Notes: a model not told the origin generated them from the letters alone. Positions 402-39,856 are shown, numbered from the stretch's first letter. The stretch is 64,000 bases of DNA from Convolutriloba macropyga (GCF_964194025.1 NC_134474.1:24490001-24554000), one strand, 5' to 3'. A program made the numbers and translations.

Positions 402-3400
402 AGACTTGAGCTGATTGCGTAGAGTCTGTTCCCATCAAAACTGCTCTGAATGTTTCCACTTTCGGAACGGCTAAAGACTTTGTGAAGATGCCCGCTGCCA
501 TTTTGTCTGTAGGAACGTAATGAATTGAAATAATCCCATCCTCCGTCTTGTCCCGAATGAAGTGAAACTTTGTCTCGGTGTGCTTGTTCCTCTTGTGCAC
601 GACAAGGTTTTGGCAAAGTCTGATACAACTTTGGTTGTCCTCTCCAATTGCTATTGGATGTTTCTGATGGACGCCAAAATCCTCTAAAAGTTGTTTCACG
701 TAGAGTGATTCCTGTACTGCTGCTGCCATGCCCTGGTATTCTGCTTCTGATGAAGAAAGAGCAACTGTATCCTGCTTCTTGACACCCCAGCTGAGTGCTG
801 CGCCACGTCCGTTGAGCTAGAAGTAAAAACCCGTTGTTGATTTTTTGTCGTTCACATCTCCAGACCAGTCTGCATCACTTTCCCCCACTAAATCATAACT
901 AGACTCTTTTGTGTAAGTAAGTTTTAAACCTTTTGAACCTTGAAGATATCGCAGAAGTCGTTTTCCGCATAGCCAGTGTTGATTGGTAGGTGCGTTCATG
1001 TGCCTGGACAGAATGTTGACTGTGAACATGATGTCTGTTCTCGTCTGTTTGACCAGATGAAGAAGTGATCCAACCAAGCTTCTGTAGATCCTCTGGTCCA
1101 CTTCTTCGTCTCCGTTCTGTGCTGTCTGAAGTTTCAAACTCAAATCAGCTGGAGTTCTTGAGGGTTTGCATTGATCCATTTGAAACCGCTCAAGCATTAT
1201 TTCCATGTAGCGTTCGTGGTCGACTGTGGCTTTGCCCTCTTCTTGTCTGATTCTAAGGCCCCGAAACCAGTGTAGTATCCTTCTCTCTTCCATGTGAAAT
1301 GCTGCCTCTAGTGCCCTCTTGACATCGGAGATCACTGTCATACTTCCTGATGCTACTATGATGTCGTCAACCCAGACCAAGATGAAGGTGTGATCCTCTG
1401 TCTCTGATCTTGCGAACAAGCAGTGATCGTTCCTGCTTCTGGTGAACCCCTGTCTCACTAGAAAGTTTGCCAGCTCTTTGTACCAGTTGTTAGCAGCCTG
1501 TTTCAAACCATAATTTGAATTATTTAGTCAACATACTGACTTCTCCCCATCTGATCCGCGTTTTACAAACTCCTGTGGCTGTTCCAGATACACTTCTTCC
1601 TCGATTGGTGAGTGCAGGAAAGCAGTCTTGACATCAAATTGGTGCATCACATGGCCCTGCTTCGCTGATAGCTGAAGTAGAATCCTGAATGTCTCTGGCT
1701 TACAGGTGGGCGCAAAAGCCTCAAAGTAGTCCAGTCCTTCCACTTCTTTGAAGCCTTTCCCCACATAGCGTGCTTTGTATTTGTCGACTTGATAACTGGG
1801 TCCCAATTTCACTTTGTAGACCCATTTGCCCTGTATGACGTCCCTGTCTGTGGGTGGTCTCACTAGGTCCCAAGTCTTGTTGTCTTGGAGTGCCTTGACC
1901 TCGTCTTTCACTGCCCGGTACCACTGGTCCCATTCGTTAGCTTGCTTGGCTTCGTAGACTGTTTTGGGTTCCACATAGTCCCCCTCAGTCACAGCAAGAT
2001 GGGTCCTGACTTCTCCAAAGAATAGCGGAACATTCCTTGCTAGTGTCCCTCCTCTGGGCTCTGCCCTTTCCGCTTGCTCCAGTGCCCCTTCGAAGAAGCC
2101 AACTGTCTGCGAGAAGTCCTCCGTTTCACTGTCTTCCAGTGACTCAGAGTCTCTGAGACTCCCTCTTGTTGCAGTAGATTCTTCGTCCAGTGCTGCTTCC
2201 TCAACATCTGAGGCATCTTGTCTCAGTGTCGTTTCTTGAGTGTTCACGCTCTCTGCGTCATGCCACTCTTCCTTTATTGCAGTAGATGTGCCCTGCTCCT
2301 CCTTGTTGCCATCGTCTTGATGACCATTATCTGGGTGCCAGATCCCCAGTTGCTGTGACCCCTCATCTAGTAGGTCGGGCGTCTCTATGTTGTCAGGGAT
2401 TGAGCCCACTTTGGATTCCTTGATGATCACATCTCGAACTGCCACAACCGTAAGTGTGTTGGGTACGTCCACCAGGTATCCGTTGTCTCCTTCAGTGTAA
2501 CCCACAAACTTTCCTTCCAATGCCTTGGGTTCAAGTTTGCTGATATCTCTGTCCCGCTTTCTCATGAAGACTGTGCAACCAAAAATAGATAGTTTAATAA
2601 TTGAAAGCTTAGGTTTTATACCTCGCATCAGCTCTGCTGGGCATTTTTCTTCTCCTCGTCTCACAATCAAGTTCCTGATCCTTGTTGCGTGAAGATTTGC
2701 TGCTCCCCACATCATCTTGGGAAGTCCTTAGTCAATGAGGAAACATCTTGCCATCTCCAGCAGTGTCCTGTTGCACCTCTCAGCTAACCCATTCTGTTGT
2801 GGCGTCTCTGGTATGGTCTTCTCCTGTAGAATGCCTGCATCTAAGCAGTATGTCATGAACTGCTGTGAGAGAAATTCCTTCGCATTGTCTTGCCTCAGCT
2901 TCTTTGGCGTCCCCACACTGAGAACAAATTTCTTCAGGCTGGCCAGTGCTTCACTCTTTGCCTTGAGCAAATCCACAAACACAAACTTCGTGTACTGGTC
3001 TGCAAACACAATGCAGAACCGGAACCCTGGCAGTGAATCTACTCTGAAAGGTCCCATCACGTCTGTGAACACCCTCTCCAGCTTCTCTGCTGCTTGGGTC
3101 TCTGCCACTCTTGGTACTGGAGTCTTTGTTATCTTGGCCAATGCACACACATTGCATAAATCATCGAGTTCCTCCACTGTCTCTGGTGCATTCCTGACCA
3201 CATTCACTTGATTCAAATGACCCAATAGTCTGTGCCACTTCCTTGCACTGTCAAGTTTCACGCTGTTGGAACTCATCTTGAATTCTAGCACGCTGCAGGG
3301 TAAGTAAAACAAGTTACTTTCTTGTGTTAGTTTTACCCGAGTTCCCTTCTGGAGTTTCATGCAGCTGTTTCCTTTCTAAAAAGTGAAGCTATGTCCCCAC

Positions 3401-4583
3401 TCCGTGCATCTTGAGACTGATAGGAGGTTTGAAGACTAGTCCGGCACACACAAAACATTCTTGAGCTCGCATTGGAATTCCCCTTTGTTTGAGGGTATGC
3501 TGATTCTCGCACAGCCTCTGCCCACAACTCTGGAAGCCTCTCCGTTGGGATTTCTGACCACTGATTGAATGGGAACAAAGTCCAGGAACGCGTCGAGGTT
3601 TGTCACTATGTGATCTGTACAACCACCGTCCACTAGCATGCCTGCTGTCTTCCACTGGTTAAGAGCCGCCCAGCATTCCTCGTCTGGTGTAGCCATTGTT
3701 GGACCCATTGCCACTGACTCATGTTTGTCTCCATCTCTTTGTCTCTTGCATGCCTTGTCTAGGTGATCTTTGTCACCACATTTGCTGCATTGTGCTGTCT
3801 CCTTCCTCCTGCAGTCCTTGGCAAAGTGTCCAGGGATCCCACACACAAAGCAGTTTCCTTTCTTGGGTCCCTTCTTGAAGTCACGCTTCACTGCCAGTGC
3901 CACTGAACCACTTTGTCCCTTGTGCCTCTGTGCTGTGCTCTCATGGAAGTTCTGCAGCCTTTTCCTCAATTCTGTGAAGTTCGTTGCAGGGTTAAAGCTT
4001 TCCTGTATAACAAAATTTTCATACCTCATTGGCAGACCATTGAGGACCAAGGCGTTGAAGAGGGTCTCTCAGACTGCTTCCCCTGCTTCTTGTAGCCTTG
4101 TGAGCAACTCCTGTCCTCTGATGAAGAAGCTATCCAAATCCTCAGCATCCTCAAGCTGCAGTCGAGCAAGCTGTGCCACCAAAGTCACCACTGTCGGCGT
4201 CTCCACACTCTGAAATCTCTCTTGCAAAAGCTTCCAAGCCTTTGCTCCAACTCCGATGCCGTCATCTCCACACAGTCATGTCTCATCAGCATGAGGGTTG
4301 TTGCATCTAGAGTCAGTGCCAGATGGCACCACACATTGTTCCTTTTCCCCTTGATGTCTGCAACTTCCTTCCCATATGCATCCTTCAGCACCTTATGGCT
4401 CTTCTTTTCATCGTTGCTCGCCACATTGGCTAGTGGTGCAGGCTCTTTAGGTTGCTCCTCTGTCCCAGGTAGTGATTTGTAGAGTCCCTTCGTCTGCATC
4501 ATTGCAACAAATCTTGTGCTCCAGATTGGAAAGTCCTTTGCCTTTCCTGTGTAGGTAAGCAGCTTCACTGTCTGTTGATCCAT
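400..4583 (-). pseudogene. copia gag-pol polyprotein, disrupted
   Basis: Two CCHC knuckles (CFVCGIPGHFAKDC, CSKCGDKDHLDKAC), protease LVDGGCTDH, pre-integrase WHRLLGH..CNVC, integrase D-D-E (TDVMGP/QDNAKEF/GLAERCNRTL), RT (KWVYKVK, QFDVKTAFL, WVDDII), RNaseH (DADWSGD, EDNQS). ORFs 400/817/1528/2728/3436 share one frame separated by premature stops; one frameshift near 4270 in gag. Confidence 0.95.
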
Positions 4584-4699
4584 CGTAGTTTGAGCAGGCA
4601 AAACAGTTGTAAAAAGTAAAGGTACTAAGCAGAAAAGGATTATGACTGTCAACAACAAATTAGTTTTGTTTTAGAAATTAGTTTTAAAACTTAGAAAAT

Positions 4700-17998: not shown

Positions 17999-18832
17999 TT
18001 ACTGCGCTGGTTTGTTGACCAAGTAGACTTTGTTGGATTTCAAGACATTGTCTCCAAACTTGTACTCTTGCTGGACACCGTCCCACGATGCTTGCCATCC
18101 TTGTTTCCCGTATCTGGGCTCATTCAGGTACGCAGAGACAACGTAGTTGCAAGCCGAGATCACATCCCAAACTGGGAGTCCACTGCACTCTCGGATTGCG
18201 TTAGCGTAAGGAGGCAGCTCAGTGCACTCCAGCAAGATTGCCTTCACTTTAGGGTACTTTACAAGGGATTCCTTAACAAGTTGTATCATTCCCGGTTGCA
18301 CCTTAGCAACATCAACTTTGTCGCCCGCAGCAACGGCTTCAAATCCGGGGACGTTTTCACACCCGACAACTCTTAGTCTGTCGTCAACGACGCTGAACCC
18401 GCAAGCCTTCTGGAATGCCTCGTTCATCTGGCTGAGTGCAACTCCGTTTGCAGTCATGATGATGATTTCATCAACGGGAGAAAGGGTCGCCTGGATGGAT
18501 TTCAACTGAAGCAGGGAACTCATCACAAAGCACACAGGTTTGGTCTTGATAATGCTCTGGGCAATATCCTGGAAGTAGACCATGAATCCGCAATCACCAG
18601 TGATCACATTCACTTTCTTGGTGTTGATGAGCCAGTTGCAAGATTCTATGAACCTCTGCTGGACAGCAGGGGTCAGCGATCCACTTTGGGCCATTTCGAA
18701 GGTGAACCCGGGGACCACTTTGTAGTAGACATCGTAGCCGTAGGTATCCGGACAGTCGATGTCCCCGCACGCAGGAGGGTAGTCATAGTCCAATCGGATC
18801 ACACCAAGAACGGGAGCTGGTTTCAGACTCAT
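17999..18832 (-). CDS. Alma-family DMSP lyase-like protein (Asp/Glu racemase superfamily), 277 aa, intronless
   Basis: Signature LGVIRLDYDYPP.CGDID.P..YGYDVYYKVVPGFTFEM, both racemase-fold cysteines (ITGDCGFM; LLECTELPPY), VPGFEAVA.GDKVDV, GLPVWD, C-terminal WQ..WDG.Q.EY.FG, as in haptophyte/dinoflagellate/coral Alma proteins. AATAAA on the minus strand at 17947-17952. Confidence 0.88.
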   Translation of the reverse strand: MSLKPAPVLGVIRLDYDYPPACGDIDCPDTYGYDVYYKVVPGFTFEMAQSGSLTPAVQQRFIESCNWLINTKKVNVITGDCGFMVYFQDIAQSIIKTKPVCFVMSSLLQLKSIQATLSPVDEIIIMTANGVALSQMNEAFQKACGFSVVDDRLRVVGCENVPGFEAVAAGDKVDVAKVQPGMIQLVKESLVKYPKVKAILLECTELPPYANAIRECSGLPVWDVISACNYVVSAYLNEPRYGKQGWQASWDGVQQEYKFGDNVLKSNKVYLVNKPAQ

Positions 18833-20397: not shown

Positions 20398-22283
20398 TTA
20401 TTTACAAACAGGAATCAGTGCATCATTTAAAGATTTGGATACAAAACTCGGTACAGATTTAGAATCACCGCGAGATACAACTTCTTCAACATGGTGCAGT
20501 TTATGATTACCAGTTTGAACTAACAAACTTGCGATCGGATTTGGTTTTGCCGAGTTTGCAAACAAAATGTCAGTGTACAGAGTATCACCAACCATAAGAG
20601 TCCGTGATAGGTCAATGTTTGTACCTCTAAACTCATATTGAACATGTTCCCACATGTATGGCTCTGGTTTCCCGACGTACGTCGCATTTCGACCTGAACC
20701 GGATTCCACCATTTTGATGATAGAACCTGTTCCACAATTTACTATTTCCGGATTTGAAGTTGGAAGTCTTGCATCGGTGTTAGTTCCAATAAAAACAACG
20801 TCATCACGCACAAGGTAACAAGCCGCAGCTGTCGCTTTTGCGTAGTTAAAGAACCAATCAGCGCCCACTATAACACAGCCAACTGATGGATCTTTCTGGA
20901 AAAACTGCCAATCAGGTATCATTTTCGGCAAGTCGACATCAGAAGCTCCGATTGATTTGAGACCTATTTTTTTAAGTTCTTCGCCTAAAGCTGGCATGCC
21001 AACGTAGAAAACGGTGGTCTTCGATTGGTCCGCTTTTTGATTCATGAGTTTGTATGCATAATAAGCAGCCGAAGAACCGGATGTTACAATGTTTGCAGGA
21101 TTTACAGGAGTGAAGCCGAGCTTCTTGAACTTCTCCGCGTATTGACTGCGAGATTTGGATGAGTTGTTAGTGATAAATAACACCTGACCAAATAAACCAA
21201 ATAGACCAAATAAATTTGAAAAACCACTTTGATTTAAATGCAGCATATACTCATTGCTAAAAAACCCGGTGACCGTTAGTTGCCTGTATTTTCTATGATA
21301 TGAACCCATTTTACCCCCCAAAAACAACATTTAAGCATCTCCACATGTTTATGAAAAATGCTAGGAACGACACCAGATATTTTAAACATTAAAAATATAA
21401 CTACGGATGAAAGGTTCCGAAAGGCGTTCTTAAGAGTTATCCCAAATATGAGTCAGATCGTATTCTTTTCAGCACAACCCATGTAATTTGAAAATCGATC
21501 AGCTTTTTCTATTTATATCCAAAACCCGTTTAAAAGCTAACTAATTCTCTCATTTTGGACACTGTTACTCATGAATTAATAATTTTCATTTTCTTTACAC
21601 GTTGTCATGTAGATGAAATGAAATACGATTTAAACTCAACACTAATTGATAAGATACAGGCGCAGATGATAAGATACACATGCAGACTAGCATGATAAAA
21701 TTTTGATCATAAACTTTGTGCCAGCTCATAACTCTGCAAAACCTAAGCAAAAAAATGTATAAAGTTAGCATCATCCAATACTCGAATGTATCCATGTTTG
21801 CCTTATAGGTGTCTTAATTCGGCAAGAAGTATTATGCTCAATACTAACTTGCTTTTGGTTTTCCAGAAGAAAATTGATGGCGTCAATGGACCCGCCAATG
21901 GGTTTATCACATTCCCACAACACTCCATCGCAATCAAACAAAAATGTGTCAAACGAATCCAGCAAATGCTTTCTATCCGCATCGTCGCTAATCACTTTGT
22001 AGGGCGGCTTGCCACTCGCCATTTTGGACGTATACTTAGATAACAACCGATATTGTTGGTTTGATCGCTGCTTCTCTAGCAGATTATATGCAGTTGAATT
22101 ATAGCAGTGATTACACAAATGTGACCTATAATCACCTTTCAAATCGTATCTGAATTGAGTAATACTTCGTTTGGATATTTTAAACAATTGAACTGTATGT
22201 AAGTATCTAGATGTGGCCATAGATTGCTTGAAAGCAACTGACAACGAGCAACAAATGTAATATTGTACAGAACGTAGACTCAT
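20398..22283 (-). CDS. PGP: Phosphoglycolate/glycerol-3-phosphate phosphatase-like HAD class IIA hydrolase; exons 22283(or 22022)-21849 and 21183-20398
   Basis: FLFDCDGVLW (DxD), FITNNS, VGKP, MVGDTLYTDILF, LVQTG. Phase-0 intron GTTAGT(21848)...CAG(21184). 319 aa from the Met at 22022, or 406 aa from 22283. Confidence 0.9.
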
Positions 22284-29606: not shown

Positions 29607-30731
29607 TTATTCCCAGGCATTCAACGTTCTTGTTCCGCTCATGGGCCTGCTACAGGACGAGCTACCGGGATAATCAGTTATTCCAGCAATATTTTTAGAT
29701 TTTGAGCAGTTCAAAGCATACCTTACAAAATCTCTATGTTCATTTTCCAAAGTATCTTTTGATAGAAATTTAGAGCTTTTCACTTTCTCCAGACGCTGTA
29801 AAATTTTACTATTTTCTTCATCGATTTCCTCAAATTTCTTGGACCTGTTAATTCCAGCACTGTGACATCGTTTGAAGGCCGCTTGTGCTTGCGAGCCGGG
29901 ATAAAGAGGCTTCCGGTGGGGCTTTTTCAGTTTAGAAAGCAATCTTTGGTTTTCTCTGTCAATTTCTCTGGCTTTAAAGGCACTTACACTCAGGTTCTTC
30001 TTATTTGTTCTTCCTTGTTGTTGAAGTCTCAGTTTTCGATTAACTGAGCTAAAGCAACTTTCTTGATCATCGTCATTATCAATTAACAGCACATTTTCCA
30101 AAATTTTAGAAATATCCGAAGCATCAGTTGTCGGGTTAAGGATTTGTCTGCTTGAATTCGGAACTCCTCTAGACGAGGCGCCTGATTTTGGTCGTGTTGA
30201 TATTGAATTAGCTCCTCGTTTTGATTTGCTCACTACTCGTTCACGGGGTAATAAACCCGATGGAAGATTTTGCTGTTTCGGTTTTGCGTACGATGATGAG
30301 TCCTCGGTAACAGACTCATCTGATGACGTCAGAGGTGAGACATCAGTAAGACGCGCTTTCTCATCTTCCTCTTCATCGTAGAGCTCTGAACGAGCAGACG
30401 GCAGTTTGATTCCATTAATAACTAAAGACTCTGAAAACCTATTATCCACTTCATCGTCATCTCTGAATTTCGCACTTCCTGAAGATCCTACAAAACTGTC
30501 TTCGCTTTCGACACCGGATAAAAAATCGTCTTCGTACGCAGCACTTTCCCTCAGAATTTCTGTTTCTAAAGGCCTTGATGATTTTGTAAACGTTTCGTTT
30601 AGGGTCTCAGTCTCGGGTGAATCAAGTCTATCTTCGTCTTCGAAGAATTTGAGATCGATGCTCTTAAAAAGCTCTTTGTCATTGTACTTGCTATTAGATT
30701 CGGTGCTATGATTAGACAGCCTGCTACTCAT
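29607..30731 (-). CDS. CFAP97: Cilia- and flagella-associated protein 97 (KIAA1430/Hemingway family), 374 aa from ATG 30731
   Basis: Acidic Ser-rich N-terminus, then KNLS....AREIDRENQRLLSKL...HSAGINR.K..EEIDEEN.KILQRLEKVK and C-terminal AWE. Splice acceptor ttcttcag 7 nt upstream of the ATG. Confidence 0.85.
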   Translation of the reverse strand: MSSRLSNHSTESNSKYNDKELFKSIDLKFFEDEDRLDSPETETLNETFTKSSRPLETEILRESAAYEDDFLSGVESEDSFVGSSGSAKFRDDDEVDNRFSESLVINGIKLPSARSELYDEEEDEKARLTDVSPLTSSDESVTEDSSSYAKPKQQNLPSGLLPRERVVSKSKRGANSISTRPKSGASSRGVPNSSRQILNPTTDASDISKILENVLLIDNDDDQESCFSSVNRKLRLQQQGRTNKKNLSVSAFKAREIDRENQRLLSKLKKPHRKPLYPGSQAQAAFKRCHSAGINRSKKFEEIDEENSKILQRLEKVKSSKFLSKDTLENEHRDFVRYALNCSKSKNIAGITDYPGSSSCSRPMSGTRTLNAWE

Positions 30732-31549
30732 AGTCGACCTGAAGAATAAATATCGGTGGGTTAACAAACCATTTGCGAACTTCTTGATTTCCTTTTTTAT
30801 GAATAAACAATTTGAAGCATTTTTCGAGCAGTTTTCAGTAGGCCTTTAAATGTGAAACTTGGCTGAAAACTTCAAAACAATCTTGTTTACTTCATTTCAA
30901 CAATTTCTCTGCATTTCTGTGTTGCTTACTTGTTTTCGCTTTTAGTAAGATCAAACACCTATGATCAACTAGAGGATTAAATTTTCAAAGTTAATCCATT
31001 GACTGAAGAAGATGAACATTCTCTGCAAAGTTCTTAAAATTATGTCTGCTCCTTATTTCTTCAATATTCTTCATTCACTAAAGTTTTCTCAATTTGGACT
31101 TGGTCAAAAACAAAACAGTTGTAATTTGTGAGAAAATAGTTTTGCCAATTGCCAAAATATAAAGCAGGACCTAAACAAAACAACTCATATACAAAAAGAA
31201 AAGAGAATCTCTCAAACTAAAAATCACTGCGAAGTGGAATAAGTTGCCCTCTCGAGTTAGAACTTTGAAAACTGAGCCTACACTAAAACGTGCTTTGAAC
31301 GGTTTCCTTTACGATTAATTTGCAAAATAAATTACAATAGACAATGTTCTCTTGAATCTTATTTTTATATCTGGAACCTCGGTGTGATCATTACAGTTAA
31401 TTCAAAATAAATAAATGCAGGGTGATTTGTAAATTGCTATTTTAGCATGCAAGTTTTCGACACAACAGTTATGCTTTCAATTGCCATGTCTCCTCCAGAA
31501 AACTTTTATTTGAAAAAAAACGGTAGGAATAAATCAATCTCACTAACTC

Positions 31550-31910: not shown

Positions 31911-33698
31911 CTCCCCTTTTTCAAATTTTTGTTAAATTCGGTAATTCCCAATTGAAAATCAAAGCTAGCCTGTAAGAGCTTCAAAATTATGCTTCATTTT
32001 GCTCGAGAAGCAAAAATTTTGCTGAAGAAAAAAGCCGGCCTCGCATATACAAGTCCCCATCTTGAAAAATTCGGAACAGTCACACAGCGTTAGATAAAAC
32101 CTTCTCTTGCTACAACGTCTGACATAACACAAGTCCTTAAACTGAGCAATGCTGGGTTTTGAATCAAATTTTACATTCAAGATTTAACGGTTTTTGAAGC
32201 GGCTCATCAAACTTGAAAACCAATTCCTTTTTTTGAGTAATCTGTGATTCAGCTGATCACGCTGAGCTCAAATTAACTGAAAAGTCAAAAGTCATAATTT
32301 TGTCAAAACAATGAAATTTTCTGTAGTTTTCACTACTATAACAGAATTATTCTGTAAACTTCAAATAATCAGCTAAGAGCTAAGTTAGGAACAAAAATTT
32401 TCAGAAGGGTCCTAAATTCTGATGTTAATAACTTTTAGTAGCAGCCCCCAAATAAAAAATGAGCTCAGATGTGGTTATTAACATGGATAACTTGGAACAT
32501 ATTTTCTTTTCCTTCGTAAGCACAAACACTCACTTGAATTTTCTACCAATTGCAACTTATCGATCACTTGTTAGACATAATGGAAATAATTGACCACTCG
32601 TCTGAATATCACAAAATATTAATTGATAATAGTTCCTGATCGCTTCGCGGTGTGGTAGAAGATACACTTTTTCGAGAACTTGGGCAGAATCGAACAACTC
32701 GAAATAGAATCGAACATGGGGCTTAAACTACGCATCAAGAACTAATCTCGCTGCTTTCAACCCGTGATCAACAAATTAATTACCCAAATGTCAGAAAAGA
32801 TGAAATAAAAATGAATATTGGAAATAAGTAGGACGAATAAAACTTGGAAACCTCGAAGAAATTAGAAACCTGCAATTCTCTTATAAGGAACACCATTTAT
32901 AAGATTAATAAAAAGCTTCTCATTTCTTCTGAAATTTCATTTTTCGTAACCAAGCATAAATACTTTGAATCCTGTGCATCTTGGGGGTACTTTGGTCACG
33001 TTATCAATTCACAAAAACGCGGCCGACTACGATCGGTCCCAATGAGCTCTGAGAAAATTGGGATCAATCGTGCTTTACGATAGCCAGATGAGGGTGTAGG
33101 ATATCACTAAGGCGCTAAGGTTTAAAAAAGGAACCAAATTTTGGCGAACTTTTCATTTGACTTTAAATAGTAAACTTTAAATTTGTAACCAAATTATGTT
33201 AGAAGCTTTACTTATGAATTCTAAAAAATTCTTTCCATTGTTAGGGGGCTGATGTGAGGGGGGGCGTCAAACTCTAAGAACCGCCCTTCAGACAATGCAT
33301 TGTCTCCAAAAGTTTCGGTGACTCGCAAACTTGGGTCGAGTAAGCCGACAGGCTCTGAGGGAACCTAATGCCCTTCGGGACCAACCTGTTTATCCCGTTT
33401 TTGACGGTGAAAAGTCAAAAGAGTCAGACAAAAAATTGGTCAAGCGCATAAACAGACTGAATGACTAATATAATTGTCACAAACCTCGTTTGAGAGCCAT
33501 TAATAAGTTTGGAATGTTTGATTGCAAAGATGAACGTAACCAATTGTACAAAGCATAACCGCTGCTTTTTAAGAAAAGACCTCAAGATATCAAAAAATTG
33601 AAATTTTTTTCAAAATGGAGGATCTAAATAATATTCTTTAAATATTTTGACTTAAATTAAACTGTTAAACTCGTTGATGAATTGAAAGTCATCACAAT

Positions 33699-36600
33699 TC
33701 ATCGGTCCCCAGATCCAGAATCCTCTTTCGCCACAGAGAAATACTTATCAATAAGAGGATCGGACAGAAATTTGTCCATGATTTCAGCTTTAGCCGCAGT
33801 TAGCACTTCCAATCCTCCGTCTTTGCTAGGGACCATAACACTAAACTGGTCAAGGAATTTTGTCAACATGGTGAATTTCTCCGGACCACCGGATCCCAAA
33901 TCTGCAGCTTTATACCATTCAAACTCAGGGTGATTCCAATTAGTCACAGAGTAGCGAGTTGTATACATCATACTCGCAAATTTCAGTGTCTTATCCATTG
34001 AAATTTTATCAATTGTTGACTGTACGAAATCATGGTTAATAGTCAAAACTCGGTTGCGAATTTTAGCTGCGGTATCAAACATTGTTTCAGACTTCAAATA
34101 ATCCAATGACCATGGCGTATCAATGTTTACAATCATGTTTCCAAAGTATGTCACTGGAACTTTTGGATTACGTCTAAATCTTGAATTACATGCAATCTGT
34201 AAGGGCAACACATTGCCTGGATTGCCGCTGGTTTCAACTTCACCAGCAATAGCATAGGCTCTGAAGAGTAAGCTGATTAGACAATCGTTACTGGATGGTT
34301 CGACGTCTTTTAGCTTTGATTGTTCACGCAACGTGTACACATCCTGTTTCAATTTCCTCAGACTCTCAGGGTCAATTTTGAGGATTTTCGCTTTCCGTTC
34401 ATTTATCATCATATCTTGTAAATACGTGGCAAAACCTTGCTTGTACACGTCATCTGGGATAATGGTGAATTCTGGATGCTCGAATATAGGCTCCTTCCCT
34501 GATGGTGAGTTAACCTCAGTTCTGCGACAGACAACTACCTAAATAAACCATTGGAAGAGTCAAATGTCACAGCCCACGGGCGGCAAAACTGACTATTTGA
34601 TATTTGGTGAGCTCTGCATGGGACTGTGAACAACACTTACGGCTTTGATAACTCAAAATGCAACCATACGTGATTGCATACATATGAGTTTTGTCGCTTT
34701 ACTTATTTGTGCCAATAAATACGCGTAGTGGTGTTTCATAATCTATTCGTGTGAAATACATGTGCGCTCAGAAATTAAAGATGCTGGTTAGTCCGCGGGT
34801 CACTCACCTTTAGTGGGCATATTTTCGGCCATTACTTGTATGTGCTGTTTTTACTAGTAGCATTCCATACAGCAATAGAATTAGCAACTAGTAAAATCGA
34901 AACATAGATCTTCATCGTGCATGATTGGTTACTGCCATTTGTTTAGTTCTGATCAAAACTAAGATATTAATGGTTGCTACACTGATTTAACTCATATTTG
35001 GACACAAAATATATCCATATTAACTTTCAAATTCAATTAATACAAAAATTTCACTTTCATTTTATACAAAAAAAATAGACCGTGCGATAAGATCTTAGAT
35101 GTAATACAGAATGCTGTTATTGTTGAATGGGGGGGGGGGGGGGCAGAAAAAGGGGGATGGTGTCCAAAACCTAGATTAAATCAAAATTGCTTTCATGCCT
35201 TTTGGAGCTCTGCTTGCTCGCCAGCTTCGGTGAACCGTACACTTAGAGTCAACTAAAGCTCTAAGAGAACTGGTCAGACACAATGCCCTCGGGCTTCACC
35301 AGTTAATCACAATTAAAAGAGACAAAGGTCAACTTAAATTATTTCCGAGAAAAAGTTCAAACGGAATGGACACTAAGCTAGGATGGTGCTAGATTCTCCA
35401 TTCAGACCCGTCTCATTTTCGTTTCTAATATTCTTCAGATACTGTCTTCAAACAGCCATTTAAAATAAAATTAAGTTTCCAAGCATTTTTCTGCCAAATT
35501 TATTATAAGTTTTCATTGCGAAAACTACACGTGTACATTTCAAAACAGCTAATTTAGCATAGTTTTTCAAAAAAAATTAAAGCCAAGTTAAGAACCCTAG
35601 CGAAGTATTATAGTAGGTAGAGAAGTTGAAGTCAATTTATCGAGGGCCACATTCAAAAGGTTTATACGATTCTTGGCTAAAACAGTCACCTAAGTGAAAA
35701 ACACGAATGACAACACCAGGATCTTTTCCGTTTATGCCCCCCCCCAGTACGTTATACACCCCCCCCCCCCTTAGATACAGAGTACGTGTCATTACATAGT
35801 AAATCATTATGTAAAAATATTGCAAGTGCGCCTGGGGGTGCAAATAATATATGCACCCACTAAGCTTAGGGGGAATGGTCACACAAACTCAACACCCATA
35901 ACCACAAAAGATGAATCGATGATGGATAAAAGCCAGCAATATTTTTTAGTTGTGAAAACAAAGAATCAAGATAATAAGATTGAGATAGTTGGAAAAGTGA
36001 TAGTATCAATAATCAAAAATCCATTAATACTTGATCAAGACAATGATCTATCAATTTTCATCTTGTCAAGCTTTTAGAACACAAATGCGAGAAATGGGTC
36101 CAGAGAAAAAAAATCGGCTGCCTCGAGATCTCTATCTCTTATATTTGCAACACAAAACGCAAACTAATGATACATTTGGCATGTTTAATTGCAAAACCTG
36201 ATTAGCTTGAAAATACTATTAAATAGAGAAAATGGTATTTTGGCAGAAGAGGACAGCTGAGAACAGGCTACTGTTAATGCACTGCAGACTAAAAAGCCTA
36301 ATGCTGCTCCGCTGCGATTACGCAGAACCAAAATTATTATTATCAAGCTATAACTATAGCTTAATCCACACGTTCAATTCTGAACTGCATTTTTATTTCG
36401 AAACTTTATTGTTTATTTCACATTAAGGAAACATTAAGGAAATTTCTTCAAATATTCCATGAGTTTGTTAACTTGTCCCATAATTTTTAAGCATCACTAA
36501 AATCTGGAATACCACTGTACGGTGACTGAACACGCTACTGTGCTACGGCTACCAGTAAATTGTCGATGTTTGTAAATCAGATTAGGGGAGGAATAACAAA

Positions 36601-39600
36601 CAAAACTAACAGCAATTTTTAACCGCACGAAACTAGAAGCACCAGAATTGAAACCTGATTTTATTGTATTTACGACGCTATACGCCTGAAAGGTGAATTG
36701 ATACAAATTAAAAATTCCTTAGCCAGAAAAAAAGCTAAAATTTAAAATTATATAGTTGCTCAAAGCAGCTGTGAACTTTTTGTATCTATAAACAGTATTA
36801 CACGCCTTTGACCCTACTAAAACAACACAGATACTAGGCAGAAACTCACGGTAATTAGCTTCAGCCTAACAAAGCCATCGATGATGTCAGTCATATTTGA
36901 AAAATCTTACTTTTTCCTCTTCGAAATGAAAAGCATTTGATCTGACTTGATGTGAGAAATCAGCGACAAAGAGGTAAAGCGAATTGATATCACAAAGACA
37001 ATGATGAACACCGTAACTGATGACCATGCCTGAATCATCGGCTAGATTCTGGACGGTTACTTTCAACAGATACTCATCCATTAATTGATCATCGACGTGA
37101 AAGTTCTCCACGCACAGTTTGTAATCAAAGCCTCGAGATTTCAGCTCAGAGAGCGAAACCACGGCTGTGTCCAGGAATTGGACCTGAGCACCTTCATTGG
37201 TCAGATTTACGACCTCTTTTTCGAGATCGATTCTGTAAAAAATACATGGGTAAACTTTGTTGATTCTATCAAGAAATTTTTCTGACTACTAAAAAACCTC
37301 ACTATTTGCTACGGTAGCCGTAGCAAAACCTCACTTCTTTATTCTTAAATTGCTCAACCGTTTCCTTGCTTTTTTATTTATGTGATTAGTCATTTGATGT
37401 TTCATCTCAATGGTATTCATCTCGTTCGAAATCGACCAAAAGTTACCAAATTAACACGACTCTGTTGAAAAAATGGGATCCATTCTGTTTCCCCCTCCGC
37501 TTAGTGGGAATATATGTTTTAAAACCAGCAGCTGTGCATTATTTAATAATGATAATAATCAACATAGCCGGCAGATTGCCGAAAAATTGCCGCGATATAG
37601 ACGCTTGTGGCCTTCCATGAATTGAAACAACTAAAGAAACAAGATAGGCAGATTGAGCAAAAGTCCTTTAGTAGACTAGAATTTTTGGGTTATATACATA
37701 CTGTCAATTTTATGATACACATACGGTCTATAAGGAAAAAACCCTGAAAGAGCTTTTTCAAAACTGATTTTCGAAATCAAAAACTCAAGACTAATACTCA
37801 AGAATTAGGACATATAAGTTTGGCACTACTTAGATGCACACTATTGATCTTTAACTAGTAAATGTTCATTAAACAAAATTCCATAAGTGAGTTCAAAAGT
37901 CATTTTTTGAGTGAGGAAGTCACGCAATTGAACTAAAAGCTGAAATGACGTCACGCAGACAAATTTTAACTGCAAAGCAGTAGAAGTCGCTGAAGTCATT
38001 GAAAAAGTCAGGGTAAGACAAAACAAAAATCTGTTAGACGACGTAAAAAAACATAGTAGGACAAGTCCTGACGTACAATTCAAAACGTTTTCATTGACTA
38101 AACAAAAAACTAGACTTAGAAAGGACTATTAGAGTGAATTGGGAAAACCATTTCTAAAAAAACTCAGATGAAAATTTAAAAAAAAAACAGAAAATCAACG
38201 CCAAAATGGCGCATGTGGACAAAAAATCACTAGCGAGAAATGGAAATTTAGTTGAAACAAAAAACTAGGCGTAGAATGAACTATGAATGGATTGGGGAAA
38301 ACCATTTAGAAAAAAATCCGATCCAAAAAATTGAAAAAAAAACAGTAAAAACCAAAGTGAAATTGCCGCATGTGAACAAAAAACCACTATTGAGAAAGCG
38401 AATTTTTGTTCAAACACCGTTTTCTCACTCTACTTTAAAATTAGAGCACAAAAATTTCACGCCGCAAAACCACTCGCATTTTCGCTCCATTTCCTGTTTC
38501 GGCGTGACCAAAATCACTACTCCAATTTGACTTCAAAAATCAGGAAAATATGTAAACAGATCTTAAAAACAGACAGCGCCCCAACACAATTCAAATTCTT
38601 TGAATTGTAAAAAAAATTAGGAGCGCAATAATAGTCGCCTGGAATTGCTGATGCGGCTATTGATAAATCAGTATTTAGGGTCAAGTCCAGGGGAGTTTTA
38701 AGTCCCTAAGCAGTTTGTCAAAGTCGAGTCTTTTGGTATTACTGCACCTGGAACAGCCACAGATAATTCTCCAGGTACAAGGTCGTTCGGAGTCATATTT
38801 GTAAGTGAAAAATTTGAAGATGTTCATCAGTATCTCCTTGGCTTTGCTGATTTCTAACTAATCGATTTAAGTGTCAAGATGGGCACCCAGTAAATTGGCC
38901 AGTTTTCAAAATGTGAGCCAACTTACAATTGGCTCACATTTTGAGATAGTAATGTGTTATATAACACAATTTGTAACTGCGGGTCATAACAAACACTTGG
39001 GGAAACAGAATAGATCCAAAAGTTGATACACGGATAAGCTGTTAGATTATTCGGGTAGGCGAATAAGGAAAACATGTTACGGCATTTATATGCAAATGTT
39101 TTATTTCTTTTGCTTCTAGGTAATACTTAATATAAGCTACCTGAACAACTTACAATTGGCTCACATTTATCGTTCGACAATGATCAATTTAGAAAAGTGA
39201 ACAACATTTATCAATTTAATTTTTTCAACAAGAATTTTCTGAGCAGATCGATCTTTCGCACAACATGGACTCCCTAAGGTTTCATATGGTGCTTGCGAAT
39301 CTCCAGACAAAATGAATTGGAAAATAACTTGACTACTTGAAGAGCATAATATTGTACCAGATTTGGTCCCTTTATCTTGTCAGCAAATCGACAAGATCAA
39401 TTAATGCATTCTATAATGTTGGCAATCTCTCTGCTTTTATAGCATTCAACAATAAACAAATTATGATTCAACAGCTGAAAGCAATACCTCCCGCTAAGCT
39501 CTGGGTACCGGTTCAGTGTAGCCTCTAATGCTCGCAACAGTTGTTCATCTTGCACTTTGTAATTGTAGAAAAACCAAACATGAAAACGGAATGGAGGCAT

Positions 39601-39702
39601 CATGGTGTCGAAGCAACACAAAGAACTTTCTTTACCATGGTACTCAGAGTGGTTGGAAGCTTTCACCAATGATGAGCTTCTGACAGCAAACTTGCTGGCC
39701 AT
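33699..39702 (-). CDS. BAHD-family CoA-dependent acyltransferase (Transferase family), 458 aa; exons 39702-39488, 37232-36911, 34538-33699
   Basis: Spliced frame is continuous (215+322+840=1377 nt, GT-AG introns, phases 2 and 0). Motifs: YPELSGR (YPLAGR), NEGA, catalytic HCLCD (HxxxD), FEHPEF, NSRFRRNPKVPVTYFGN, VTNW..WYKAADLGSGGP (DFGWG-like), PSKDGGLEV. Confidence 0.88.
37561..38661 (-). mobile_element. HINE of the same family, in BAHD intron 1
   Basis: Starts AACATAGCCGGCAGATTGCCGAAAAATTGCCGC and ends GCGGCTATT. Shares internal GAGTGAGGAAGTC and AAATGACGTCA blocks with 24541-25039. Confidence 0.7.
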
Positions 39703-39744
39703 TTTATTCAATTAAAGAAATCTGAAAATAGGAGTCAAATTCTC

Positions 39745-39856
39745 GGGTCTTTCCCATTATAGCCCCCCCCCCCCCCCCCCATGAAATTATAGCCCCCCAT
39801 TATGGTATAATTACCATGATTTTGGGGGGGGGGGGGGGCTATAATAGGAAAGACCC
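39745..39856. mobile_element. 112-bp palindromic MITE with poly-C/poly-G arms and 8-bp TSD
   Basis: TIR GGGTCTTTCC(C/T)ATTATAGCCCC...; flanks AAATTCTC / AAATTTTC; absent from the paralogous BAHD fragments in the tandem array. Confidence 0.8.

Follow-up and report, generated by a model that had tools for sequence, protein, structure and literature searches.

A 64,000-nucleotide stretch of chromosome 7 of the acoel Convolutriloba macropyga (the window; G000:C7:24490001-24554000) contains a gene, LOC142342714, whose product has the hallmarks of the BAHD acyltransferases of plants and fungi. Three minus-strand exons (39702-39488, 37232-36911 and 34538-33699) were spliced to give 1377 nt, that is, 458 codons plus a stop; in the track of open reading frames (ORFs), they appear as three separate open frames on the minus strand (39397-39711, 36887-37162 and 33699-34448). 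Both introns are of the GT-AG type, with the donors GTATTG and GTAAGA and the polypyrimidine acceptors TTTTTTACAG and TTTATTTAG. A search with exon 3 as the query led to XP_075250348.1, with 100% identity, on a 75-Mb scaffold. RefSeq isoform X2 (P0001, 408 aa) has the 39488/37232 junction and the 34538 acceptor in common with the 458-aa model. A first-pass annotation, made from the DNA alone, had proposed a three-exon frame of 458 aa with BAHD motifs and had considered the gene easily missed. The frame and its motifs were confirmed by the splice model, the Pfam match and the positions of the motifs, but the gene had not been missed, since RefSeq already models the locus, although only as an "uncharacterized protein".

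All three exons matched the Pfam family PF02458 (Transferase), and the matches were colinear along the profile. Exon 1 covered profile positions 4-73 (16.5 bits), exon 2 positions 87-176 (20.1 bits) and exon 3 positions 187-430 (50.7 bits, E 1.4e-13; gathering cut-off, 22.7), and the full-length paralogue P0083 scored 121.7 bits. The motif YPELSGR is located at residues 66-72, with the codon for R72 divided by intron 1, the N-terminal domain contains an HxxxD motif of the catalytic type (H149-C-L-C-D153), and YFGN is found at residues 310-313. The DFGWG-type motif is present in a relaxed form only, as DLGSG (residues 392-396) in the homologous column (F to L and W to S). At this site, the acoel consensus is ADLGxGxP, and since the non-acoel homologues in the alignment also lack the W (consensus DFGxGxP), the strict DFGWG of plants is not a family-wide feature. 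An AlphaFold model of P0086, a relative with 34 to 36% identity, had a predicted local distance difference test score (pLDDT) of 91.7 and a predicted template modeling score (pTM) of 0.91. When it was compared with EpHTT, hydroxycinnamoyltransferases (HCTs) and agmatine coumaroyltransferase, template modeling (TM) scores were 0.74 to 0.78 by query and 0.79 to 0.85 by target, and all of the top 50 matches of this model in the PDB were BAHD-fold proteins. Furthermore, the family profile matched solved structures of HCT-type BAHDs with an E value of 3e-23 and fungal TRI101 with 2e-8. The size of 458 aa and the fold seen in the P0086 model fit a monomer of ~50 kDa with two CAT-like domains. Sequence comparison thus supports the prediction that this animal has, in LOC142342714, an acyltransferase gene of the BAHD (PF02458) type.

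Four sequencing runs of one study contain the locus, and three of them cover exons and introns evenly and are DNA-like. The small run X4 had a depth of 226, 113 and 115 on the three exons compared with 0 to 17 over most of the intron sequence; the few intron bins with a higher depth are those over high-copy repeats. According to the genome note, the libraries of the project are HiFi, Hi-C and poly(A) RNA-seq from three specimens (PMC13650328). From this list and the exon-restricted depth, we infer that X4 is the poly(A) RNA-seq library of the project. The ends of the X4 contigs coincide with the exon borders at 34538, 36908, 37232 and 39488, where 36908 is equivalent to 36911, since the letters GTA are common to the start of the intron and exon 3. 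These borders are those of the junctions 39488/37232 and 36911/34538, which had been predicted from the DNA. One X4 contig (36908-37232) spans all of exon 2, and therefore, the form bearing HxxxD is expressed. The contig of exon 1 extends from 39488 to 39723 and continues with 19 letters that are absent from the genome at this place. On the gene strand, these 19 letters plus the genomic AGA read TGTGATAAACTTATTAAATAGA, which is identical to the last 22 nt of the published spliced leader of the acoel Symsagittifera roscoffensis (PMC9911081); over these 22 nt, the leaders of the two species are the same. The 19-mer of the leader was counted 2036 times in the C. macropyga genome, versus 0 times for a control. 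The trans-splice acceptor (...tattttcag/a) is located 19 nt 5' of the ATG. The mRNA of LOC142342714 is trans-spliced to the acoel spliced leader, which only the nuclear machinery of the worm could bring about, and the gene is therefore expressed by the worm itself. Immediately 5' of the trans-splice site, the minus strand has a long G homopolymer and a repeated ...ctataat... motif (39760-39790). The positions of the features of the gene are compiled in Table 1.

Table 1. Features of LOC142342714 in the window (positions counted from the first letter of the window; UTR, untranslated region)
Feature	Position	Strand	Remarks
5' UTR, 19 nt	39703..39721	-	Follows the acceptor AG of trans-splicing (39723-39722)
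Exon 1, coding part	39488..39702	-	ATG at 39702; residues 1-71 plus 2 nt
Intron 1	37233..39487	-	GT..AG, 2255 nt; low X4 depth except in bins over a high-copy repeat
Dispersed host repeat, ~1.1 kb, within intron 1	37561..38660	.	9991 first-look candidates genome-wide
Exon 2	36911..37232	-	Residues 72-179; bears the catalytic HxxxD
Alternative donor AAA/GTAACC of RefSeq isoform X2	37060..37061	-	From comparison of P0001 with the spliced model
HxxxD codons (H149-C-L-C-D153)	36989..37003	-	Exon 2 translation
Intron 2	34539..36910	-	GT..AG, 2372 nt; high-copy repeats at ~35560-35960 and ~36160-36360
Exon 3, coding part	33699..34538	-	Residues 180-458 and stop (33701-33699); encodes the C-terminal BAHD domain, in which YFGN and DLGSG are found
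Codons of the DFGWG-equivalent loop (D392-L-G-S-G396)	33888..33902	-	Exon 3 translation; family consensus ADLGxGxP
Approximate 3' UTR	33582..33698	-	End point inferred from the length of a 957-nt X4 contig (178 nt past 33760)

LOC142342714 is not a single gene. A protein search of the C. macropyga genome yielded 38 exon-level matches with 29 to 47% identity on C1, C9, C10, C11, C12, C16 and an unplaced contig; the matches on C9 comprise an array at 6.17-6.37 Mb and sites at 18.2 and 65.5 Mb. With exon 2 as the query, 14 complete homologues were found in the genome, none of which has a stop codon, and 13 of these second exons have kept HxxxD, the exception being the C10 copy LOC142348466 with HYQVCD. 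The frames of the paralogous second exons end on one side in what looks like read-through into a polypyrimidine tract and acceptor and on the other in a GT donor, as would be expected if the exon borders were common to the family. The paralogues are deeply diverged (29 to 53% identity), and at least 14 of them are spread over eight chromosome-scale scaffolds and an unplaced contig; the count of 14 genes for the family is a lower bound. LOC142348466 (C10:33.02-33.06 Mb; P0083) forms, together with P0086, the most divergent branch, in which HYQVCD, an HxxxxD motif, is conserved between two species; further traits of this C10 branch are an acidic insert of low complexity and a much larger number of introns (at least seven exon pieces over 40 kb). 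On C16 (44286081-44290329), three exon-3-like fragments of the family are arranged head to tail with a period of ~1931 bp; they may represent either partial copies in tandem or an exon that has been repeated.

Homologues were also found in other public assemblies. Three contigs (L035, L036 and L069) have the same three-exon structure, with breaks after ...GR and before a ...KPSG.P.F.HPE block, and all three encode HxxxD. No DNA similarity to the C. macropyga genome was found for L035 and L069, and copies of the spliced leader were not found on these two contigs. A fourth sample contained an orthologue of the C11 copy (P0006; 60% identical), and the adjoining intronless UGGT gene is 78% identical to UGGT of C. 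macropyga, indicating that this sample is a fairly close relative among the acoels. The UGGT gene itself (~1560 aa) is a single uninterrupted ORF in C. macropyga (C3:55196258-55200796) and in the related acoel (L071:11050-15729), an unusual state for animal genes this long. Also, a transcript from a marine metatranscriptome encodes 462 aa with 65% identity to the C10 copy. The introns and the duplications are thus older than the divergence of these species. Thus, LOC142342714 belongs to an old, acoel-specific family with shared intron positions, which is fully domesticated, as is evident from its spliceosomal introns with a host repeat, the trans-splicing of a spliced leader, the multigene family and the intron positions conserved across species.

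Searches for relatives were made with the pieces of the three exons, with isoform X2 of RefSeq (P0001) and with paralogues. Among 1.84 billion cluster representatives scanned exhaustively with phmmer, only 81 hits had E<=1e-3. Hits below E 1e-10 were C. macropyga copies or predictions of the size of an exon, and the majority of these predictions were checked and had the acoel signature; the exception was the fragment P0016 (E 1.5e-15), which was placed by the tree in a non-acoel clade. A PF02458 gene of the P0016 clade is present on L038 (ENA ERZ26167977), a gene-dense eukaryotic contig of 1.5 Mb with 27% GC and short introns, on which P0034 was hit at E 3e-8; its source is either a protist or an early-diverging fungus. 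The next named hits (E 3e-10 and weaker, 24 to 31% identity) were a metagenome protein, encoded on a dense contig without introns, and proteins of Pythium oligandrum, Basidiobolus, Syncephalis, Ceratiomyxa, Selaginella and the lichen ascomycetes Bacidia and Chaenotheca. Of the named sequences outside the acoels, PF02458 proteins of fungi and protists come nearest (Basidiobolus ORX97077, Syncephalis KAI9598635, Pythium TMW68127, Ceratiomyxa and TRI101; E 4e-9 to 1e-7, 26 to 31% identity). They resemble the acoel proteins in having a relaxed DFGxG motif, but they have no supported sister relation to them, and L038, the one homologue examined on the protist side, lacks the intron 2 position of the acoels. 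Among the named hits of the 81, there was no animal other than C. macropyga (other xenacoelomorph genomes were not searched directly) and no alga. A pattern specific for the clade found a single, already known contig of the acoel type in JGI metagenomes and no match in 185,579 prokaryote genomes; both are weak negatives, since the pattern is clade specific.

Maximum-likelihood trees were calculated from 85 rows (quick) and 64 rows (careful, LG+C20), with mostly plant BAHDs from a further search as references. The acoel-type sequences formed one clade with a support of 100/100 on a long stem of ~1.3 changes per site. The node containing the plants had a support of 96/93, and the acoel clade was outside of it. 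The first-pass annotation had called the gene an old, domesticated acquisition. Its age and its domestication are borne out by our data, but its acquisition by horizontal transfer is not established, since there is no resolved donor clade. With somewhat better than an even chance, we favor a single ancient acquisition over vertical descent, because the family is apparently absent from other animals and holozoans, as far as this was tested. In this scenario, the donor would have been a eukaryote other than an animal, the transfer would predate the divergence of the sampled acoels, and intron gain and duplication would have followed.

Several points weigh against an acquisition. Plants and Dikarya grouped separately, the acoel clade had no resolved sister, and the backbone of the tree was without resolution; in neither tree was the acoel clade nested with support inside any donor clade. 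Constraining acoels and plants to one clade was worse by 23 log-likelihood units but was not rejected by the approximately unbiased (AU) test (p 0.119). Furthermore, only about one-third of the distant hits carry the name of an organism. The same unresolved backbone suits a vertical inheritance, in which an early ancestor of the eukaryotes or of the opisthokonts would already have had PF02458, which would have been kept on the way to the acoels and been lost in most other animals, before it diverged fast and expanded. PF02458 relatives do exist in fungi (Basidiobolus, Syncephalis and ascomycetes), Amoebozoa (Ceratiomyxa), an oomycete and plants. The acoel sequences are nested within none of these groups, and the structure of the gene is wholly host-like. 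However, vertical inheritance requires that the family was lost independently many times among animals and other holozoans, the hits from the 1.84 billion representatives included no named holozoan and, apart from C. macropyga, no named animal, and the acoel clade has, beyond its poorly placed position, no affinity to the fungi, which are the nearest opisthokonts. We therefore regard vertical inheritance as rather unlikely, albeit as a serious contender.

What could the enzyme do? By analogy with the BAHD family, from which the mechanism is carried over, the product of LOC142342714 would be a two-domain, acyl-CoA-dependent acyltransferase, in which His149 of HxxxD would deprotonate a small-molecule acceptor at its hydroxyl or amine and the acceptor would then attack the thioester of an acyl-CoA; the DLGSG loop would be the structural counterpart of DFGWG. 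Since HxxxD is conserved across the family, this standard BAHD acyl transfer to a hydroxyl or amine acceptor is the most likely activity predicted. The protein is probably cytosolic, like other BAHDs, as judged from an N terminus that by eye has no obvious hydrophobic signal. The expansion in a tandem array is typical of families in specialized or detoxifying metabolism, and therefore, such a role in small-molecule metabolism is most likely for this family, too. The more specific roles proposed in the first-pass annotation, acylation or detoxification of algal metabolites or the making of a defensive ester, are reasonable but speculative, and a prediction of donor and acceptor is beyond reach at 20% identity.

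The protein might also have a BAHD fold but not be an acyltransferase. It might act as a lyase or isomerase, as do the BAHD-fold enzymes EPS1 and COSY, or be a non-catalytic binder, and this copy might also be drifting toward loss of function. Indeed, EPS1 and COSY were matched both by structure and by profile, DLGSG lacks the W of DFGWG, and the C10 subclade has HxxxxD instead of HxxxD. Other observations point the same way: the donor used in isoform X2 (37061/37060) removes residues 130-179 and with them HxxxD, and two of the three exon 2 differences between individuals are non-synonymous (E178K and T131I). In a second assembly, exon 3 has a Y-to-D change. The fold was predicted for the relative P0086 and not for the 458-aa protein itself. 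Because of the non-synonymous differences and the isoform without HxxxD, a relaxed constraint on the LOC142342714 copy is possible. On the other hand, HxxxD is kept in LOC142342714 and in 13 of the 14 paralogues, the exon that bears it is covered by one full-length RNA contig, and true acyltransferases are its closest relatives whichever measure is used, which makes a function other than acyl transfer improbable. Taken as a whole, we consider it likely that LOC142342714 is a functional nuclear acoel gene for a BAHD acyltransferase of an old acoel-specific family, with a probable role in specialized or detoxifying metabolism and a probable ancient acquisition.

The solved structures that match best are HCT-type enzymes of plants. 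BAHDs of plant clade V (HCT/HQT, EpHTT [9wts], Selaginella HCT [6dd2] and agmatine coumaroyltransferase [7cys]) belong to the same Pfam family and have the same two-domain fold, with HxxxD at the domain interface, ~450 aa and the R..P..YFGN block. However, the identity in structural alignments is just 17 to 22%, plants have DFGWG where acoels have DLGxG, and the acoel sequences are a separate, fully supported clade. Moreover, the host is an animal, and the acyl donor is probably different from hydroxycinnamoyl-CoA. The first-pass annotation had drawn a parallel to the malonyltransferases of the whitefly; Xia et al. are said to have described them in 2021 as a recent transfer nested within plants with a known detoxifying role. 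The Bemisia tabaci genes BtPMaT1 and BtPMaT2 encode plant-derived phenolic-glucoside malonyltransferases (PMC9599486), and as in the acoels, a BAHD-family gene is encoded and expressed in an animal. Beyond this likeness, the analogy fails: in contrast to the recent, plant-nested whitefly genes, the acoel family is an ancient, deep and acoel-specific clade of at least 14 members, with intron positions conserved across species, without an identifiable donor and with only 24 to 31% identity to its nearest outsiders. A recent transfer of this kind, with a plant or the green alga Tetraselmis, the symbiont of C. macropyga, as its donor, would be in line with the structural matches and with the AU test, which leaves a clade of acoels and plants unrejected. 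However, identity to the plant sequences compared is just 23 to 29% (Selaginella, 28%), no named alga was hit, the acoels are outside the plant clade, the paralogues are many and deeply diverged, and the intron positions are common to other species. A recent transfer is therefore very unlikely. Octocoral terpene-cluster acyltransferases (Burkhardt 2022 and Scesa 2022, cited in PMC10548852) are animal encoded and part of a specialized (defensive) metabolism; as merely possible BAHDs, we take them as a lead only.

Contamination by an alga or fungus, an assembly artifact or a dead pseudogene with a chance alignment of frames, for which nothing but the unusual taxonomic spread of the family could be cited, is refuted by the integration of the gene in the host (a chromosome-scale scaffold of 75 Mb with animal-type neighbors, a host repeat in an intron and the acoel spliced leader on the mRNA), by the intact frame with its Pfam match and by the presence of the locus in three DNA runs and an RNA-type run.

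The repeat in intron 1 has scored copies with 82 to 91% identity on many chromosomes, and the depth of the DNA runs over it reached ~2e6. It is non-coding, has an internal duplication of 157 bp (38100-38416) and is probably a non-autonomous transposon. Elsewhere in the window, a Copia-type long terminal repeat retrotransposon was found on the minus strand (817-4658), with several ORFs encoding zf-CCHC, Pol_BBD, gag-pre-integrase, rve, SH3_retrovirus and RVT_2 domains. The minus strand also has a gene for a HAD-superfamily hydrolase, split into two ORF pieces, and an exon with a match to CFAP97/Hemingway, a family of cilia proteins, at 20398-22283 and 29607-30767; an ORF of 277 aa (17999-18832) had no Pfam match. 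No terpene cyclase or P450 was seen beside the BAHD gene within the 64-kb window.

BAHD enzymes drive much of the specialized chemistry of plants and fungi, and Convolutriloba is known among aquarists for its toxins. The only animal BAHD cases that we could document from the literature are the recent, plant-derived genes of the whitefly, and no paper on BAHD genes in acoels was found. Although already annotated, LOC142342714 has been neither named nor discussed. It is a new, well-supported animal member of a known enzyme family, in which the acoel genes make up an entire subfamily. An old, expressed and multi-copy BAHD family adds an enzyme class to animal metabolism, in a lineage that is important for early bilaterian evolution and for the symbiosis of animals and algae. 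The family provides concrete candidate genes for acoel chemistry and a tractable test case for ancient transfer versus differential loss. Tentatively, and with the odds rather against it, we propose that acoels own a lineage-specific BAHD toolkit, acquired by horizontal transfer and then expanded to at least 14 genes, of which some form a tandem array, for a plant-like acylation of small molecules. If this is true, the toolkit would parallel the whitefly case but would have arisen independently and be far older and far larger, and it may modify metabolites of the algal symbionts or build the toxins of Convolutriloba.

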